From contig CP075494.1 of assembly GCA_021613535.1 (NCBI GenBank), forward strand, positions 10,912,001 through 10,976,000: DNA of 64,000 nucleotides, read 5' to 3'. This DNA is from Adineta vaga. Taxonomy: Eukaryota; Animalia; Rotifera. Positions within the stretch are counted from its first letter, which is position 1. Each line of letters starts with the position of its first letter. The notes below the pieces were generated by a model. That model searched no databases, had not been told where the DNA came from, and was given only the letters and a program-made list of their open reading frames with translations. A program made the position numbers and the translations under genes. Positions 1,514-19,874 of this stretch are shown one piece after another.

Positions 1514-2241
1514 GTTCTCCTTCGGGACAACGGGAATCATTCTATCAACAAAGTCAAAATGAAAACAGAAAACACCTTGTGACGAGCTTCTTTTCTTAAG
1601 AACTACAAATTGCTATCATAGTTGCTCTTCGTCCATTGTTTCCTTTTCCATCAAAGCAAAGCTCGCTACTGTTATGAGAAAAATGAAATTTAATTCTTCA
1701 AGTCTCGTCTCGAATCATCATTTTGAATCAGAATCTTGTCAATAGAAAGATACGATTCTTTTTCTTTCGGAATATAATTGAATATTTCGATGTTTGAAAA
1801 ATAGAAAACTAAAATCGGAAATCCTGTCTCTCCTCATTAATGTTGAATCGAAATGTAGGAACTTCGAAGATTGATTTATAATGAATCGTAGATATGCTGT
1901 TAATATACGATTATCTTGACTCATCCAACTTTGATAATTGTAATATAAATATGATTGAATATCGTTAATATATATACATATTGGGCTTTCCAGTCATTTG
2001 TGTTTCAATGATGTGCAGATAATGAATTTTTCTCTCGTACTACTTTCTCTCATGTGCTTATTAAAAGGAACTTAGGAAGAGACAAGAGATTTCACAGGCT
2101 TCAAACGGAATCATAGCAATGATCTGTTAAAAGAGTACTATTCTGCATCCAAGTTTCCTGATGCAACAAAGTAAGAAAATAAGTATATTTGATTTTCATT
2201 ATGTTTTTCGTAAGATGATTCCCGTTATCCCGAAGGAGAAC

Positions 2242-2437
2242 GGGAGTGGACCAAACCCGACGGCACTGCAGTGTCGAGACGATCCATGGTCCGGGTCCAA
2301 GTGTAACTCGGATGATCCCGACCGATGTCCAAAAATCTGCTTGAAAGAGCCTGGCCTCAATGAGACCAGCGCCGGCTTTCAAACCGACGAGAACAGATAC
2401 TACACTTTGATCTTAGCCGAAAAGGCGCAGAAGCGAT
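2242..2437 (-). ncRNA. U2: U2 snRNA, variant type
   Basis: All U2 motifs present; 5' end reads ATCGCTTCTGCGCC; stem III carries compensatory changes. Confidence 0.93.
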
Positions 2438-2609
2438 AACTTCGACCAAGTTTCCTCTCCCTTTTCTGCACTACGTCTGCACACCTTGATAATCAATTGA
2501 TGGGACATGAGTCACTGATTGATTTTCGTAATATCGTGACGAAGAAATACACTGTTACGTAATTACGAATGATGATTGTTATTGCTTCAATTACATTAGT
2601 TTGATTAAA

Positions 2610-2718
2610 GTGTTGCTCTGGCAGATTGGTGTAAGACACCAATCCGCATTTTATCGTCATCGCAACATGTCTGTGATCTAGTGAGATCATTTACCTCTTG
2701 GTGTAAGTTGTAATGAGC
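2610..2718 (-). ncRNA. SL RNA gene, class C (24-nt exon GCTCATTACAACTTACACCAAGAG)
   Basis: Exon 2718-2695 plus GTAAAT donor; 3' hairpin GCGGATTGGTG/CACCAATCTGC. Confidence 0.83.
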
Positions 2719-2850
2719 AACTTTCGTCGATGATGTGAAGAAAACGATGTTTCTCCAGTCCGTAGACATCTGATGTATGTAAAAGAAAGAAAAAAGAGAA
2801 AAGCGTAATGACAGAAGAGTTGGGGTTCTCGGTGGAAAAAGAAGAAAGTT

Positions 2851-2957
2851 GCTTATTACAACTTACGAAGAGGTATATATCGATATGGAAACAAATACAG
2901 GTTGCGATGACGATATCATGCAGAATGGTGTTTTACTCCGATCTGCCAGAGCAACAC
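2851..2957 (+). ncRNA. SL RNA gene, class D (22-nt exon GCTTATTACAACTTACGAAGAG)
   Basis: Exon 2851-2872 plus GTATAT donor; conserved GTTGCGATGACG...CAGAGCAACAC. Confidence 0.83.
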
Positions 2958-3369
2958 TTTTTATAAAATATAAATGGAAAATAATACGAGAGTCGTTCTC
3001 ATACATTAACAATCAATCAATTGAACAAGTTATTTTATATATGTGCAATGCTATTTTTCTTTGATGAAAAGATGTAGAACAATAAGAATGGAAATAGTAG
3101 AAGTATTTCATCTACTGGATTTATTTCGAATATATGTAATTATAGTATAATTAAATAACAGTTGCTTTGTCAAAATAAGATGTATCGATTATGATGATGG
3201 TTATTAGAAGTGAACAAGTATTTGTTTAACATTCTTTCACTCTTTTATTATTTAATCCGAGACATTTTCTTTGAATTGACTTTGTGATGGAATAAAGTAG
3301 GGAAATTATTATAGCTGATTTTCATTATAAGTTTTTGTTAGAATGATTCCCATTGTCCCGAAGGAGAAC

Positions 3370-3564
3370 GGGAGTGGACCAAACTCGACGGCACTGCAGT
3401 GTCGAGACGATCCGTGGCACAGGTCCGAGTGAACTCGGGTGATCCTGGCCCATGTCCAAAAATCTGCTTGAAAGAGCCTGGCCTCAATGAGACCAGCGCC
3501 GGCTTTCAAACCGACGAGAACAGATACTACACTTTGATCTTAGCCGAAAAGGCCGAGAAGCGAT
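3370..3564 (-). ncRNA. U2: U2 snRNA, major type
   Basis: Reverse complement of the 1319-1513 sequence. Confidence 0.97.
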
Positions 3565-3711
3565 AACTAACAAAAACATTTCTTTTCTCTTTTCTGCACC
3601 GTGTCTAAACACATTTCACTTTTAGTTTACGTCGACGAAAACAGTCATCGGATTATTTCGCAAGGAAACGAAATTACATTAGATTGTTTTCGCTTTGTTT
3701 TGAATGAAATA

Positions 3712-3820
3712 ATGTTTCTCGGGCGGATCAGTATTAATCATCAACCCGTACGGTTTCGTCATCGCAACATGTGTTTGATCTAGTAAGATCGTTTACCTCT
3801 TGGTGTAAGTTGTAATAAGT
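3712..3820 (-). ncRNA. SL RNA gene, class B, with a diverged 3' half (possibly decaying)
   Basis: Exon ACTTATTACAACTTACACCAAGAG (3820-3797) plus GT; many substitutions in the 3' hairpin and terminal stem. Confidence 0.65.
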
Positions 3821-3935
3821 AACTTGATTCAATGATATTCTGTACATATCTGACGTATGTAAAGAAAAGAAAAGAAAAAAAGAGAAAGTGTAGAGACACG
3901 CTAGAGGGCGTGGATCCTTGACTAAGGAGAAAGTT

Positions 3936-3966
3936 GCTTATTACAACTTACCAAGAGGTAAATATC
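3936..3966 (+). pseudogene. SL RNA gene class A, 5' part (exon and donor), interrupted by the retrotransposon
   Basis: Perfect exon 3936-3957 plus GTAAATATC, then unrelated sequence; the rest of the gene resumes at 9051. Confidence 0.92.
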
Positions 3967-4151
3967 TTCACGGATTTTGAATTGAAAAACAAACACTAAA
4001 TTTTTCCAAATTTAAATAAACAAAGAAGATATCTGTGAAACGAGCGATTTTAGCGTGATTCTTGTCAGCTCATTCTGCGCTCTATTTCAATTTATCCTTC
4101 TATTATATATTTCCATTAACCTTTGCTTATCTTTGGTTACGAAATTTTATA

Positions 4152-5348
4152 ATGTCGTTTCACCAGTTGATACGGGAAGCAGTTTTGCTTACATTGATTA
4201 AAGGTAGCGATCGAATTGATCGCACAGGAATGATTAATGCTCTCGGTCAGATCATTCCAGTGTCAGATATTGACTCGTTTGGAAATCTCGGAAATTTCTC
4301 TGAATGGTACGTTATCTTTAAAACAACCAATGCAAGAGAAATTATTCTTAAAAATAATGAATTTAAAGTTGGTGATCAAACATTTATGATTAGCGAACCA
4401 TACAAACATGTCAAAATTATTAGATTACTTAATGTTCCACCAGCTATTTCAGACGATGATATTCGATCAATTGCTTCAAAATGGGGAGGTTTAGTTCTTA
4501 ATGTTGATGTAGAAAAACTGCCACAACCTTTTGAAACAATCAAAACATTCGTACGTCGCATACGTATTCGCTTTTTTACACGCCAAGACGAAGAAAAAGT
4601 ACCTATTAGTATTCGTTATAATGGTTACACGTTCTCGGTCAATCTTGAAGGTCGTCAAAAAGTTTGTTATAGATGCAAACAAGCTGGTCATATTAAAGCG
4701 GAATGTAAAGTTTTAAAATGTCATAAATGCTTTACACTTGGACATGATGATCCATTATGCCAACAGAATAAATCATATGCAGCTGCAGTTAGTGAAACAC
4801 CAGTGAACATTTTTTCTACAAACTCACCAAGTATTCAAGGTGATACGGGTGTTGAATCTACTCCAGTTGGACAGGTATTTAAACCAACAACGGCTTCACA
4901 AAAGCGGAAAAAGAAAGTTTGCCCTCGTTGTCAACAATCTGGTCATAAACCCAAAGATTGCTCTCTTCAGCAAAATCTTAATATTCAACCTGGAAAAGAA
5001 GATACAAATAATCATGTTATTTCCGTCGAAGAAGTTCAACAAACAACAACAACTTTGACAAATACAAAAGCTGTACCAGAAAATGAAGACAATGTAATAC
5101 TTGATCCACAACAGTCCACATTATTAGAGGATCAAAATGAAAAAGCTGTGGTTGCTACAATAGCCACGTCATTACAAGAACGTATAATGTATCAAGCATA
5201 CAAGAACTCAACAAGTGATTTTAAACGAACATGTGCAGATAGAAGCATCGATTCGGATCTAGAAGTGGACCCAAAGAAAGCTCACACATACGATTCTTCA
5301 ACGTCGGTAATGGACGAACAAGAGGAGGGAGAAGTTAATGACCAATAA
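4152..5348 (+). CDS. Retrotransposon ORF1 (gag-like nucleic-acid chaperone, three CCHC knuckles)
   Basis: CYRCKQAGHIKAEC, CHKCFTLGHDDPLC and CPRCQQSGHKPKDC; the first ATG after the insertion point is at 4152. Confidence 0.9.
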   Translation: MSFHQLIREAVLLTLIKGSDRIDRTGMINALGQIIPVSDIDSFGNLGNFSEWYVIFKTTNAREIILKNNEFKVGDQTFMISEPYKHVKIIRLLNVPPAISDDDIRSIASKWGGLVLNVDVEKLPQPFETIKTFVRRIRIRFFTRQDEEKVPISIRYNGYTFSVNLEGRQKVCYRCKQAGHIKAECKVLKCHKCFTLGHDDPLCQQNKSYAAAVSETPVNIFSTNSPSIQGDTGVESTPVGQVFKPTTASQKRKKKVCPRCQQSGHKPKDCSLQQNLNIQPGKEDTNNHVISVEEVQQTTTTLTNTKAVPENEDNVILDPQQSTLLEDQNEKAVVATIATSLQERIMYQAYKNSTSDFKRTCADRSIDSDLEVDPKKAHTYDSSTSVMDEQEEGEVNDQ

Positions 5349-5541
5349 CTCTCCATCTCACAAGTAAAAATCACACAAAAACATTAAAAAGAATAAATAT
5401 ATATACACATGTATATATAATATTTAAAAAAAAAAAAAAAATTAATGAACTAATTAAAAGTCCAAAAAAAAATGTTTAAAAATCATTCAAAATAAAAAAA
5501 AAAATTATAAATTCCTTACCGATTAAACAATTACATCAAAC

Positions 5542-8500
5542 ATGATTACAATTTTCTCATTTAACATCCGTGGCATTGTATCAGTTAATAAACAATCATT
5601 ATTTCGAGAATGGCTCAAAGTTAACCCGCATGATATTGTTCTTCTACAAGAATTACATATTACGTCGAAACAACAATTAGATCTCTTCAAACAATCATTC
5701 ACTGATTATGCTATTTTCTGTAGTCTCGGAACATGGTCAGCTGGTGGTGTAATGGTCATGATAAAACACAAATTACTCATTATTGATTCTGGCGTAGATT
5801 ATAGTGGTCGGATCGCCTTCGCCAAAATTATAATCAACAATTGTCCTATTACAGTAGCTAGTGTTTATGCACCAACACAAGTAAATGAAAGGTGGGATTT
5901 TTTCAAAGATCTTCATTTATATATTCCGACATCTCTTTGGATGGTGATTGGAGGTGATTTTAATTGTATTGCTGATCCAACAAAAGATCGTCTTCGCCAA
6001 GAAGGTCGAAATGATCAACGTTCTTATGCAACTCTCAATAGTGAATTTCTACAACCATTATCTTTAATCGAATTATATCGCTCAAAACACCCTCGTTCAA
6101 TCGTGTACTCTTACCACAATGAATCCAGAAACATACACAGTCGCATCGACTTTTTCTTTGGAACGAAGGTTATACGCAAAAACATCTTGCATATTGCTTA
6201 TACACCCGTTGGCATTTCAGATCATGATGGAATGTCACTTCATTTATCATCACCTCCAACAACAACAACAGAATACCATAGATGGATATGTAATGGCGAA
6301 GTGATTAAAAGACCAAGTTTTCTACCTCGTTTCCAAAAAATATGGGAAGTACTCAAAAAGTCTTCGAATTTTGAAGATCTTGCCTGGTGGTCAGATTTAA
6401 AAACTAGTTTAATTTTGCTCTTACAAGATGAACAAAAACAAATGGTTGCTGAATCACGAAATGGTATTAAATGTCTTCAAGAACGTTATCGCACACTTGC
6501 AACGAATGCTTCAGCTAACGATTTAAAGGAGATGGATAAAATTCGTGATACCATCCACGACACTTTGGTCAAAAAAGTAATGGCAAATAATCATGGACAC
6601 GGTGATAAAACAACTCAAGAACTTGGAGAAATTGCTCTTTCACGTCTATCAAGTACGCGGGCAAATCAATCTGTTATCCATTTCCTCAACCATCCACTGA
6701 AAGGACGTGTAGAGGAAATTGACGACATGCTCGAAGTTGCCACACTTTTTTATCATGAATTATATAAAGAAAAAACAATCAATATGTCATCATGGAGTGA
6801 ATTGTTCGCTGATTTACCAAAATTAAGTGAAGAAGATCGTGAATTATTAGATCGAGAAATATCAGTATCGGAATGCTTTAATGCACTTCGTGCTATTCCT
6901 GATCAAAGATCACCAGGTGATGATGGCATTACTGCCGAGGTGTGGCGATTGATTTTCCCTATAATTGGCAGCCATTACATTCAAATGATTAACACTGCTA
7001 AAACAAAAGGTCAATTCCATCCTAAATTTCTTCAAGCATTGTTAACTCTCCTCAAGAAAAAGAACAAATCCGACGGGTCGATGAAAGATTTTCGACCTAT
7101 CTCCTTGATGAACATCGATTACAAGATATTATCAAAGGTTCTTAGTACACGTCTACGAAAGGTGATTGCCAACATCATTCATCCTGATCAAACATGTTCA
7201 GTTCCTGGCCGGTCAATACAGGACAATGTCATTTTAATCAGATCAATCATTGAATACCAAAGACGAATTCGTGATCCGATTGGGATAGTTTTATGGGATC
7301 AGGAGAAAGCATTTGATAGGATTAACCATCGATATTTAGTAGGAGTATTAAATGCTTTTGGTTTTACTTCCAATATCATCAATTGGATAAAACTTCTTTA
7401 TGGCAACGGATCCTTTAGAATCAAATTAAACAATTACATCTCTACGTCGATTGCTTTTAGTTCGGGCGTCAGGCAGGGTTGCAGCCTATCAGGCTTATTA
7501 TTTATTATTTGTCTCGAACCACTCCTAAATCGTATACGTTTAAATCAATCAATTCCTGGTGCATTTCTACCTGGAAGTCAGTTTAGAGCTATTCGTCAAA
7601 TTATTTTTCCAATTAATGACAATATACTCAATACGGAACAAGTGAAAATCAAAACCATAGCTTACGCCGATGACATCAACACACTTGTACGAAATCGCGA
7701 CGAAGAAAGATCAACAATGGACATGTTTGAATTATATAGTCAAGCATCAGGAGCAAAAGTCAACAGCTCCAAAACCGAAATACTATGGATATCAGATTGG
7801 CTGACTCCACCATATTTCGAAGCCAAAATTAATTGCGAATGGTGTATCTTTCTGGGTATTCCAATGGATACAAAAGGACAACTGCCACCACTCGAATTGG
7901 AAAAGAAATTAAATAGTATCAAACAACAGATTGGATATTGGTCCACAATTAACCTTTCTCTAAAGGAACGAGTAACGGTGTTGAAAGTTTTTATTTTGAG
8001 TCAATTGATATATTGGTTTTCACTCTCAGTTATTCCGAAGAAAGTGGTGGCAAAGCTGCAAAATATGTTTGTGAAGTTCTTCTGGTCTTCTTTGGGTCCT
8101 CGAATTCATTTAAGAACAATTATCGGACATAAACATGACGGGAGTTATAGTTTACCGCACCTTCAAGCAATGATCGAAGCACTTCGAATTAAATGTGGTT
8201 CTCAACTGATCAATCCATTGCATTTAGCTCCTTGGAAATTTTATGCTTTAATAGAAACAGGTGTTCAATTACGACAATATGCCCCACGTCTTTGGTCAAA
8301 TCTGATACCTCACATCGAGAAAGGCGATTCTTTCTTCCATGAAGTTGCATCAAATACTGCAAAGTGGCTGAAAGCAGGTGGAAGTCTAAACATACAACAA
8401 AATCAACCATCCTTTTACTGGCAAATCGTTAATCGATTTTACTTTCGTCATCCTGTTTCTGTACGTAAAGTTCCACTTTTAAAAAATATCAATTTTTTCC

Positions 8501-8955
8501 GATTGCTGAGAGAAAGCTTGCCCAGTCACACACTGGACTTTTGGATGATCTTAGCCAATTATGGAATCCATACTCGATCACGTACCGGCCACAATAAAAA
8601 TACAAGAAAATGTCTTTTATGCAACGAAGTCGAAACTCCATCTCATCTTTTCACGAAATGTTCCGCTTTTAACAAGCTCTTTGACTGTCTCAACGACAGA
8701 TTAGAATCAATCTGTGGTAACAAAATTAGTAAAACAACAATCGATATTATATACCTCAAAGAAATCAATCAGTTATCGCCCATTCGTCAAATACGGAAGA
8801 ATATCGTTTTTATGATCGGCAACTATTTATTTTCCATATGGAAATATCGAAATATCGCCAGACATCAATGTAGTCGAAATTTTGAATTAGATCCATCCAT
8901 GGCAACCCGACTTTTCTTAACAACCATCAAACGGTTACCTTTTGATGTTGGTTAG
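5542..8955 (+). CDS. Retrotransposon ORF2: APE endonuclease, reverse transcriptase and C-terminal CCHC
   Basis: Endonuclease motifs FNIRG, LLQE, VYAP, GGDFN, SRID, SDH; RT motifs SPGDDG, FRPISLMNIDYK, DQEKAFD, GVRQGCSLS, YADD; C-terminal CLLC..ETPSHLFTKC; 1137 aa uninterrupted. Confidence 0.97.
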   Translation: MITIFSFNIRGIVSVNKQSLFREWLKVNPHDIVLLQELHITSKQQLDLFKQSFTDYAIFCSLGTWSAGGVMVMIKHKLLIIDSGVDYSGRIAFAKIIINNCPITVASVYAPTQVNERWDFFKDLHLYIPTSLWMVIGGDFNCIADPTKDRLRQEGRNDQRSYATLNSEFLQPLSLIELYRSKHPRSIVYSYHNESRNIHSRIDFFFGTKVIRKNILHIAYTPVGISDHDGMSLHLSSPPTTTTEYHRWICNGEVIKRPSFLPRFQKIWEVLKKSSNFEDLAWWSDLKTSLILLLQDEQKQMVAESRNGIKCLQERYRTLATNASANDLKEMDKIRDTIHDTLVKKVMANNHGHGDKTTQELGEIALSRLSSTRANQSVIHFLNHPLKGRVEEIDDMLEVATLFYHELYKEKTINMSSWSELFADLPKLSEEDRELLDREISVSECFNALRAIPDQRSPGDDGITAEVWRLIFPIIGSHYIQMINTAKTKGQFHPKFLQALLTLLKKKNKSDGSMKDFRPISLMNIDYKILSKVLSTRLRKVIANIIHPDQTCSVPGRSIQDNVILIRSIIEYQRRIRDPIGIVLWDQEKAFDRINHRYLVGVLNAFGFTSNIINWIKLLYGNGSFRIKLNNYISTSIAFSSGVRQGCSLSGLLFIICLEPLLNRIRLNQSIPGAFLPGSQFRAIRQIIFPINDNILNTEQVKIKTIAYADDINTLVRNRDEERSTMDMFELYSQASGAKVNSSKTEILWISDWLTPPYFEAKINCEWCIFLGIPMDTKGQLPPLELEKKLNSIKQQIGYWSTINLSLKERVTVLKVFILSQLIYWFSLSVIPKKVVAKLQNMFVKFFWSSLGPRIHLRTIIGHKHDGSYSLPHLQAMIEALRIKCGSQLINPLHLAPWKFYALIETGVQLRQYAPRLWSNLIPHIEKGDSFFHEVASNTAKWLKAGGSLNIQQNQPSFYWQIVNRFYFRHPVSVRKVPLLKNINFFRLLRESLPSHTLDFWMILANYGIHTRSRTGHNKNTRKCLLCNEVETPSHLFTKCSAFNKLFDCLNDRLESICGNKISKTTIDIIYLKEINQLSPIRQIRKNIVFMIGNYLFSIWKYRNIARHQCSRNFELDPSMATRLFLTTIKRLPFDVG

Positions 8956-9050
8956 CCTAGTCATTGCACTAACATACTTGTTTTTTCAGGTTGAATTTAG
9001 TGGTTTTTTGTCATGGATGTAAATAAATAAAACAAGAGAGGAAAAAAAAA

Positions 9051-9125
9051 ATCGAAAAAGATAAAATACATGTTGCGATGACGAAATCAAGCGGATCGAT
9101 GGTAACATTGATCTGCCAGAGCAAC
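9051..9125 (+). pseudogene. SL RNA gene class A, 3' part after the insertion
   Basis: ATCGAAAAAGATAAAATACATGTTGCGATGACG...CAGAGCAAC is identical to the class A intron. Confidence 0.92.
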
Positions 9126-12416: not shown

Positions 12417-12521
12417 GCTTATTACAACTTACCAAGAGGTATATATCGAAAAAGATAAAATACATGTTGCGATGACGAAATCAAGCGGATCGATGGTAAC
12501 ATTGATCTGCCAGAGCAACAC
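12417..12521 (+). ncRNA. SL RNA gene, class A
   Basis: Exon 12417-12438 plus GTATAT; 105 nt. Confidence 0.92.
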
Positions 12522-19769: not shown

Positions 19770-19874
19770 TTGTTGCTCTGGCAGATCAATGTTACCATCG
19801 ATCCGCTTGATTTCGTCATCGCAACATGTATTTTATCTTTTTCGATATATACCTCTTGGTAAGTTGTAATAAGC
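19770..19874 (-). ncRNA. SL RNA gene, class A (empty-site paralogue of the interrupted gene)
   Basis: Exon 19874-19853 plus GTATATATCG; both flanks match those of 3936/9125. Confidence 0.92.

Follow-up and report, generated by a model that had tools for sequence, protein, structure and literature searches.

Low-copy, sequence-specific non-LTR (non-long-terminal-repeat) retrotransposons of the NeSL group in nematodes and the CRE/SLACS/CZAR group in trypanosomatids insert in the exon of spliced-leader (SL) RNA genes. The literature gives 'spliced leader exons' as the target of SL-specific elements (PMC4640811), and it lists SL genes as targets only of NeSL, CRE, SLACS and CZAR, which are elements with restriction-like endonucleases (PMC4640811, PMC8869645). 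The long interspersed elements (LINEs) of the Tx1 clade, whose endonuclease is of the apurinic/apyrimidinic type (APE), are known from U2, U5, 5S and transfer RNA (tRNA) genes, microsatellites and transposons (PMC4494074, PMC3706591), and satellites are also listed; Keno is found in U2, Dewa in tRNA, Mutsu in 5S and Kibi/Koshi in microsatellites (Kojima and Fujiwara 2004, as cited in PMC4494074 and PMC4640811). Here we describe an APE-type element in an SL RNA gene. In a 64,000-nucleotide (nt) stretch of the genome of the rotifer Adineta vaga (hereafter the window; C5:10912001-10976000 of a 100.8-Mb assembly in 6 contigs), positions 3958-9051 hold a full-length non-LTR retrotransposon that lies in sense orientation within an SL RNA gene, with both of its open reading frames (ORFs) open. 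In our reading, whose probability we put at about 0.8, it is an undamaged member of Tx1_Av, a LINE family of the L1/Tx1 group that occurs in few copies and is specific for SL RNA genes.

With Keno-type Tx1 LINEs the window element shares an APE domain, a reverse transcriptase (RT), an ORF1 with CCHC motifs, a poly(A) tail, low copy number and site-specific insertion into a multicopy small-RNA gene. It differs from them in its target, since the intron of an SL RNA gene is not on their target list, and its 3' flank is SL intron and not U2 from nt 39, as it is for Keno (site: PMC4640811). With NeSL and CRE/SLACS/CZAR it shares the niche, that of low-copy, sequence-specific non-LTR elements in SL RNA genes, but their endonuclease is restriction-like (PD-D/ExK) and C-terminal to the RT, whereas that of the window element is an N-terminal APE. 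A Pfam search of the element found no restriction-like endonuclease, its hits being confined to zf-CCHC, Exo_endo_phos, RVT_1 and zf-RVT. Moreover, unlike those elements, it leaves the SL exon intact and has its junction within the intron, at nt 7/8.

The position of the insertion can be read against the uninterrupted genes nearby. SL genes in this genome fall into classes, class A (intron GTATATATCGAAAAAGAT) and a GTAAATATCC class among them, and in five other SL copies of the window the empty site reads CCAAGAG followed by GTATATATCGAAAAAG (in a longer reading, CCAAGAG followed by GTATATATCGAAAAAGATAAAATAC). At the filled site, CCAAGAG (ending at 3957) is followed by an 18-nt leader, GTAAATATCTTCACGGAT (3958-3975), the element body (3976-9041, beginning TTTGAATTG...), a tail of ten A (9042-9051) and then TCGAAAAAGATAAAATAC... 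from 9052. The interrupted gene belongs to class A and lies on the forward strand. Its exon (3935-3957) is an exact pattern match to the canonical ...GCTTATTACAACTTACCAAGAG, with the splice donor next at 3958 and an approximate transcription start at 3935; the region upstream (3876-3934) is probably its promoter, and over the 60 nt that precede the exon core it does not differ from the uninterrupted class A paralogue at 19853(-). The displaced rest of the intron (9052-9125) starts at intron nt 8 (TCGAAAAAGATAAAATACATGTTGCGATGACG...) and is identical to the empty class A copies from there to the conserved end of the SL RNA, ...CCAGAGCAAC. When the intact SL RNA is folded, the end of the exon pairs across the splice donor and intron nt 6-19 form a second small hairpin, UAUC-GAAAAA-GAUA, and the 3' junction falls at the 5' base of this hairpin 2. 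Hairpin 2 (window 12444-12457 in an intact gene), the stretch that the element carries or that occurs in duplicate, has kept its stem among SL paralogues and species, and its loop varies (GAAAAA, CTAAC, TTCAC and TTTTCC are examples). Of the two junctions only that at the 3' end, at intron nt 7/8, is fixed.

An earlier note on this DNA, made from the letters alone, had recognised an intact, sense-oriented L1/Tx1-type element with both ORFs open inside an SL gene, and the ORFs and Pfam domains confirm this; its assignment to the APE-type LINEs of the L1/Tx1 group likewise stands, given the Exo_endo_phos domain, the match to human L1 ORF2p and the residues of the L1 endonuclease (EN) motifs. The note had also read the empty class A site in the five other window copies correctly. 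Its statement that the insertion lies '3-9 nt into the SL intron' is wrong, because the 18 nt at the 5' end do not come from the target gene and are foreign to it, the 3' junction being at intron nt 7/8.

DNA searches with the 3' and 5' ends of the element, together with a six-frame search for ORF2, found three full-length copies in the 100.8-Mb assembly, all three of them in SL genes and in sense orientation. The window copy (C5:10.9 Mb) has an intact ORF2 and an A10 tail, followed by TCGAAAAAGAT; the sibling copy (C5:9902159-9907240, minus strand), in which ORF2 is broken by a 1-bp deletion near window-equivalent position 7962, ends in A18 followed by TCCTAACGGAT; and the C6 copy (C6:1428217-1433278, plus strand), with ORF2 intact, ends in A18 followed by TCCTTGCGGAT. 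In each, the intron resumes at nt 8 after the tail (TCGAAAAAG, TCCTAACGG and TCCTTGCGG). Our census counts about 59 SL genes genome-wide, each about 105 bp long and together making up about 6e-5 of the genome, and the chance that three copies would all fall in SL genes is about 2e-13, with the common position and orientation not yet counted. A share of more than 20% of flanks has been used as the criterion of target specificity (PMC4494074), and Tx1_Av-type copies far exceed it. Because other RTs in the genome reach at most 31% identity to ORF2, and this in the RT region only, Tx1_Av is the only L1/Tx1-like family present.

The three A. vaga insertions are independent events, because their host SL variants, promoters, outer flanks and tail lengths (10, 18 and 18) differ. 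If instead the element had no target specificity, a single chance insertion could have been spread through the SL arrays by segmental duplication, gene conversion or ectopic recombination. SL genes are indeed repeated and clustered, the sibling and C6 loci have the same layout of a head-to-head SL pair, and the bodies of the window and sibling copies are 99.9% identical (over about 5.07 kb they are separated by 5 substitutions and a single 1-bp deletion). Such spread does not account for the unrelated outer flanks, for host genes that are three different SL variants with different promoters, or for tails of A10 and A18 on the nearly identical window and sibling copies. The flanks of the C6 and sibling copies align across the SL units only (84-94%), the elements themselves being 95.9% identical. 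Between the window and C6 copies, which are 95.7% identical over the whole aligned stretch with the SL flanks included, the ratio of nonsynonymous to synonymous divergence (dN/dS) is 0.12 for ORF1 and 0.15 for ORF2; this also speaks against spread of one insertion, and the copies therefore diverged under selection on the proteins, as expected for successive active elements. Finally, lineages with 48-83% identity occupy the same site in other species, including Rotaria. Spread through the arrays is already largely refuted, and we consider it very improbable.

These relatives emerged from a protein search, which returned a tight group of 14 proteins with 48-83% identity to ORF2, including members from Rotaria socialis and R. 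magnacalcarata; the next match has at most 29%. Contigs were examined for twelve of these relatives, and L080, L088, L089 and L090 stop before a flank. SL-hosted relatives account for five further loci (7 contigs, 5 ORF2 lineages). The SL intron flanks L076 and L077 (ORF2 identity 83%; both junctions in L076, the 5' one in L077, whose contig ends in the tail), L081 (53%, both junctions), L082 (51%, 3' junction) and L083 (48%, both junctions). The 3' junction of L079 from R. socialis (64%) reads GATCTTTGCTGATCAAATACAGGTTGCGATGACGA, and an inverted empty SL gene adjoins it. In the pair L086 and L087 (48%), L086 was read at both junctions and L087 at the 3' one, and a perfect 13-bp duplication, TTTTCCGATCAAA, is present. 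Tails range from A10 to A26 across all copies, relatives included. L081 also has an A18 run in its 5' untranslated region (UTR) at 1436-1453, about 85 nt past the SL leader, possibly what is left of an older tandem insertion that was truncated nearly throughout. The lineage is common to Adineta and Rotaria, and it would have held the SL niche at least since the two genera diverged.

Target specificity is not absolute, and several points weigh against it. L078, a 65% relative, lies at a non-SL site with unrelated flanks; L004, a 5'-truncated 3' end of about 106 bp with an A8 tail, lies at another (C4:3807996-3808091); and the 3' junction of SL-hosted relatives shifts by lineage between intron nt 6 and 10, and possibly further in for L083. 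The endonuclease is the putative source of specificity. One could suppose instead that it is only loosely specific, and that the association with SL genes arose mostly through purging of insertions into single-copy DNA in these compact genomes, through guidance by homology between SL genes and the element's SL-bearing RNA or complementary DNA (cDNA), or both. The off-target L078 and L004 and the drift of the junction by a few nt would agree with this, as would the probable presence on the element RNA of SL sequence able to pair with targets. Against it, three independent A. vaga insertions share the same 3' junction nucleotide, selection by itself leaves unexplained why the insertions share a single position and orientation in a gene of about 105 bp, and in the Tx1 and R1 clades specificity comes from the endonuclease (PMC4494074, PMC1919474). 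We think loose specificity unlikely and favor an SL-specific element.

The earlier note had raised SL-RNA specificity as a possibility, and the full-length copies (3/3 in SL genes) and the SL-hosted relatives, that of R. socialis included, substantiate it. The flank tabulation it had proposed for 3'-end matches gives a tail followed by intron nt 8 in 3/3 A. vaga copies and by nt 6-10 in relatives. It had named copies at non-SL sites as evidence to the contrary, and here all full-length copies and most relatives are SL-hosted, the exceptions being L078 and L004, which are off target, and L084 and L085, which are in U2. As for the two off-target cases, the L078 element spans approximately 1620-6590 of its contig (ENA ERZ25067825), adjoins TPR-repeat genes, has an ORF1 broken by a stop and stands between the two units of an imperfect direct repeat, each about 17-19 bp long (GTGTGATTRGTCA.ATAT); the L004 fragment, an off-target insertion, has a short internal deletion and sits within another repeat.

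The U2-hosted members, P0013 and P0014 (loci L084 and L085; R. magnacalcarata and R. socialis), have 48-50% ORF2 identity to the window element, and their tails are followed by GTATCTGTTCTCGTCGG..., which is U2 sequence. Their flanks (GTATCTGTTCTCG...) score as U2 against Rfam with 89.9 bits (L084:3407-3575) and 69.5 bits (L085:6289-6475), and in human numbering the junction starts near U2 nt 36, which is 3 nt short of nt 39, the site used by Keno and Utopia. These relatives resemble Keno-type Tx1 LINEs in that they insert into U2. In a quick IQ-TREE analysis of 31 ORF2 proteins, with SH-aLRT support only (marked by asterisks) and several members with unread flanks, the bdelloid clade is monophyletic (100*) on a long stem and divides into three subclades. 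Because the U2-hosted pair nests beside the SL-hosted P0011 and P0012 (98*, 97*), and because all three subclades contain SL-hosted members, parsimony suggests that the clade began with SL targeting and that U2 targeting in Rotaria is derived. In the proposal of Kojima and Jurka (PMC4640811), the SL-specific NeSL arose as a branch of Utopia, which is U2-specific. There too, SL- and U2-targeting lineages are close kin, but the switch in the bdelloid clade apparently ran in the opposite direction, from SL to U2.

The leader of the window copy (3958-3975, plus strand), which comprises the donor and intron hairpin 2, differs at 6 positions from the class A intron GTATATATCGAAAAAGAT, and its 18 nt match exactly the intron start of an SL gene of a different class at C2:8.68 Mb. 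Because the leader matches this C2 class, neither GTAAATATC nor the T>A difference seen at intron nt 4 belongs to the target. All copies with a known 5' side have the same order: exon, intron nt 1-18 (to nt 23 in L086), body, tail, and the intron again from nt 8-11, and because the intron restarts at nt 8-11 after the tail, the hairpin is present twice. The two hairpins agree to different degrees, in 13/13 positions in L086, 10/11 in the sibling copy, 9/11 in the C6 copy and 6/11 in the window copy, and they are clearly different in L076, L081 and L083.

One account of this arrangement would be that the 18-nt leader is an ordinary target-site duplication made at each insertion, that its mismatches arose later by mutation or through a short conversion patch, and that the element has an internal promoter. 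The perfect 13 bp in L086 and the 10/11 and 9/11 matches of the sibling and C6 copies suit it, as does the failure to find an RNA contig that spans the junction. However, 5 of 11 nt are mismatched in the window copy and nt 4 is changed as well, as against 5 substitutions in about 5070 nt of the body; between the sibling and window copies, 3 of 11 leader nt are different, whereas their 5.07-kb bodies show no more than 5 substitutions and a single 1-bp deletion. Because the body is nearly unchanged relative to the sibling, mutation after insertion cannot explain the hairpin mismatch of the window copy. Nor does this account lead one to expect that the 18 nt would exactly equal another natural SL class, and a conversion patch of about 15 nt that spared both the class A promoter and the downstream intron is improbable. 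Leader and flank are mismatched in L076, L081 and L083 as well. A duplication with later changes thus seems to us unlikely, though a little less so than loose specificity.

The simplest reading of the pattern is instead that the leader probably came from a transcript driven by an SL promoter and that the 5' end was joined by homology; the partial matches of 10/11 and 9/11 would then reflect a repaired heteroduplex. R2 is described as relying on the promoter of its target and as forming variable 5' junctions by homology, and the same has been suggested for SINEU, which is mobilised by Tx1 elements (PMC4494074). The window element would resemble R2/R1 and the heads of SINEU in co-transcription with the target gene and in homology-shaped 5' junctions, and would differ from them in that the borrowed unit is a promoter of small nuclear RNA (snRNA) type, that of the SL gene, together with a leader exon used in trans-splicing. 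From the SL donor to the ORF1 start codon, the three A. vaga copies have 194-202 nt without a single ATG, where composition predicts 3.2-3.6 (194 nt and 3.2 in the window copy); this ATG-free leader is confined to A. vaga, as the SL intron itself holds an ATG in other lineages. This leader and the low-depth contigs that lie over both ORFs, from three runs presumed to be RNA in two studies, both lend weak support. Two further findings count on the other side: the runs presumed to be RNA gave no contig across the junction of SL and element, although contigs cannot reveal transcript starts, and a search of the haploid assembly (pattern A-tail + TCTTCACGGATATAAT) found no SL gene of the C2 type that hosts a donor copy.

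If these observations are put together, insertion could proceed as follows. The APE-type endonuclease would nick the bottom strand at SL intron nt 7/8, that is, 7 nt past the donor and at the 5' base of hairpin 2, and the poly(A) tail of the element RNA would be reverse-transcribed from the nick (target-primed reverse transcription). Transcription of the template RNA would start from the SL promoter next to the donor copy, and the RNA would therefore begin with the SL exon and 18 nt of intron. The 5' end of the new copy would then be joined through homology to the SL exon of the target, as the SL portion of the cDNA anneals to the upstream target strand. Where the hairpins of donor and target are alike, an apparent target-site duplication of 11-13 bp would result; where they are unlike, the unpaired end would be trimmed and the donor hairpin copied in, as in the window copy. 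The insertion would cut off the exon and splice donor from what follows them in the SL RNA, so that the interrupted gene is probably dead as a source of SL, yet able to drive the element.

We put forward, tentatively and as somewhat doubtful, a broader proposal: that these are 'SL-headed' LINEs, which use the host's SL promoter and whose messenger RNA has at its 5' end the leader exon of the host's trans-spliced messages, and that an APE-type lineage has recently switched from SL to U2. If the first part is true, the element would pass as a trans-spliced message for capping and translation and would perhaps escape silencing, while the insertion would remove the part of the SL RNA that is needed for its consumption in trans-splicing. 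If the second is true, a pair of elements about 50% identical would be available for mapping the residues that determine specificity. The idea that a retrotransposon may draw on the trans-splicing system for both promoter and 5' leader is testable, and closely related SL- and U2-specific endonucleases are material for studying how APE nucleases gain sequence specificity.

The family to which the element belongs is already catalogued. Residues 492-579 of ORF2 are identical to two RT core blocks of 'Tx1_Av' in the alignments that supplement Nowell et al. 2021 (PMC7943196), in whose library Tx1_Av is classed as LINE/L1-Tx1 and traced to Flot et al. 2013. Tx1_Av is thus the same family as the window element, with no sequence difference between them, and the Tx1 label used here is taken from Nowell et al. 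2021. Features of the Tx1/L1 group are present: an N-terminal APE, a LINE-type RT with a zinc-binding tail (zf-RVT, below threshold), an ORF1 with CCHC motifs and poly(A). In our tree the bdelloid clade stands apart from fish proteins labelled LINE-1 or LORF2, no named Tx1 references being included. The names of the relatives are almost uninformative, and the protein clusters matched are generic for APE and RT only. The behaviour of the element is of a known kind, that of a target-specific Tx1-type LINE.

The earlier note's suggestion that the element might be undescribed fails for the family and so far holds for its target. Neither 'spliced' nor 'snRNA' appears anywhere in the text of Nowell et al. 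2021 or in 66 of its supplements, and the full-text literature searched, which did not cover the Flot 2013 supplement, Repbase or Dfam, reports neither an SL-specific element of APE or Tx1 type nor a target for Tx1_Av. The SL target appears to be new for APE-type elements, with about one chance in three that it has already been noted for Tx1_Av somewhere in the literature. It would extend the list of Tx1-clade targets to SL RNA genes and would mean that an APE-type lineage reached this niche independently of the elements with restriction-like endonucleases; it also bears on how bdelloid rotifers confine transposons to harmless sites.

All parts of the element lie on the forward strand. A 5' UTR (3976-4151) separates the leader from ORF1, and the first ATG met downstream of the SL donor is that of ORF1. 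ORF1 (4152-5348) encodes 398 amino acids (aa) from its ATG, and its translation contains three CCHC zinc knuckles of the form CX2CX4HX4C (Pfam zf-CCHC, E 1.3e-5). The spacer between the ORFs (5349-5541) contains runs of A16 (5426-5441) and A11 (5494-5504), both kept in the sibling copy, and one contig from a run presumed to be RNA has an extra A at 5493. ORF2 (5542-8955) encodes 1137 aa. Its APE endonuclease occupies aa 6-228 (nt 5557-6225) and matches Exo_endo_phos with E 3.4e-13, and its RT occupies aa 506-749 (nt 7057-7788) and matches RVT_1 with E 1.8e-36. The zinc-binding tail covers aa 1006-1044 (nt 8557-8673), and for it zf-RVT gives E 0.0025 and 18.9 bits, below the cut-off of 27.5; the same family, PF13966, is annotated in several close relatives of ORF2. 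The best relative of solved structure is human L1 ORF2p (E 3.8e-64 over aa 2-880), and when ORF2 is aligned with human L1 EN, it is seen to conserve the residues of the motifs FNIRG, QELH, VYAP, GDFN, RIDF and SDH, which are the catalytic motifs of L1 EN. The 3' UTR (8956-9041) has two overlapping AATAAA signals (9022-9031), 11-20 nt ahead of the tail (9042-9051), which is A10 here and A18 in both other genomic copies.

The SL gene cluster of the window fills its first 23 kb, with eight SL exon matches in an exact pattern search and eight Rfam hits to U2. This cluster departs from the paired layout that prevails among SL genes: class A SL genes are intermingled with U2 genes, two copies have an exon ending in CGAAGAG, and SL and U2 genes are interleaved in the A. 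vaga genome. The TTAAAAC exon variant at the two other filled sites was considered as a sequence brought by the element and rejected, because 6 empty SL genes carry it and it is therefore a natural paralogue class. Read joints that skip about 5.09 kb were likewise rejected as empty alleles, since their other intron letters identify them as paralogous empty SL genes that align to both flanks. SL genes are mostly arranged as head-to-head pairs with a spacing of exactly 160 bp, and a gene with the canonical exon is often paired with one that carries the TTAAAAC variant.

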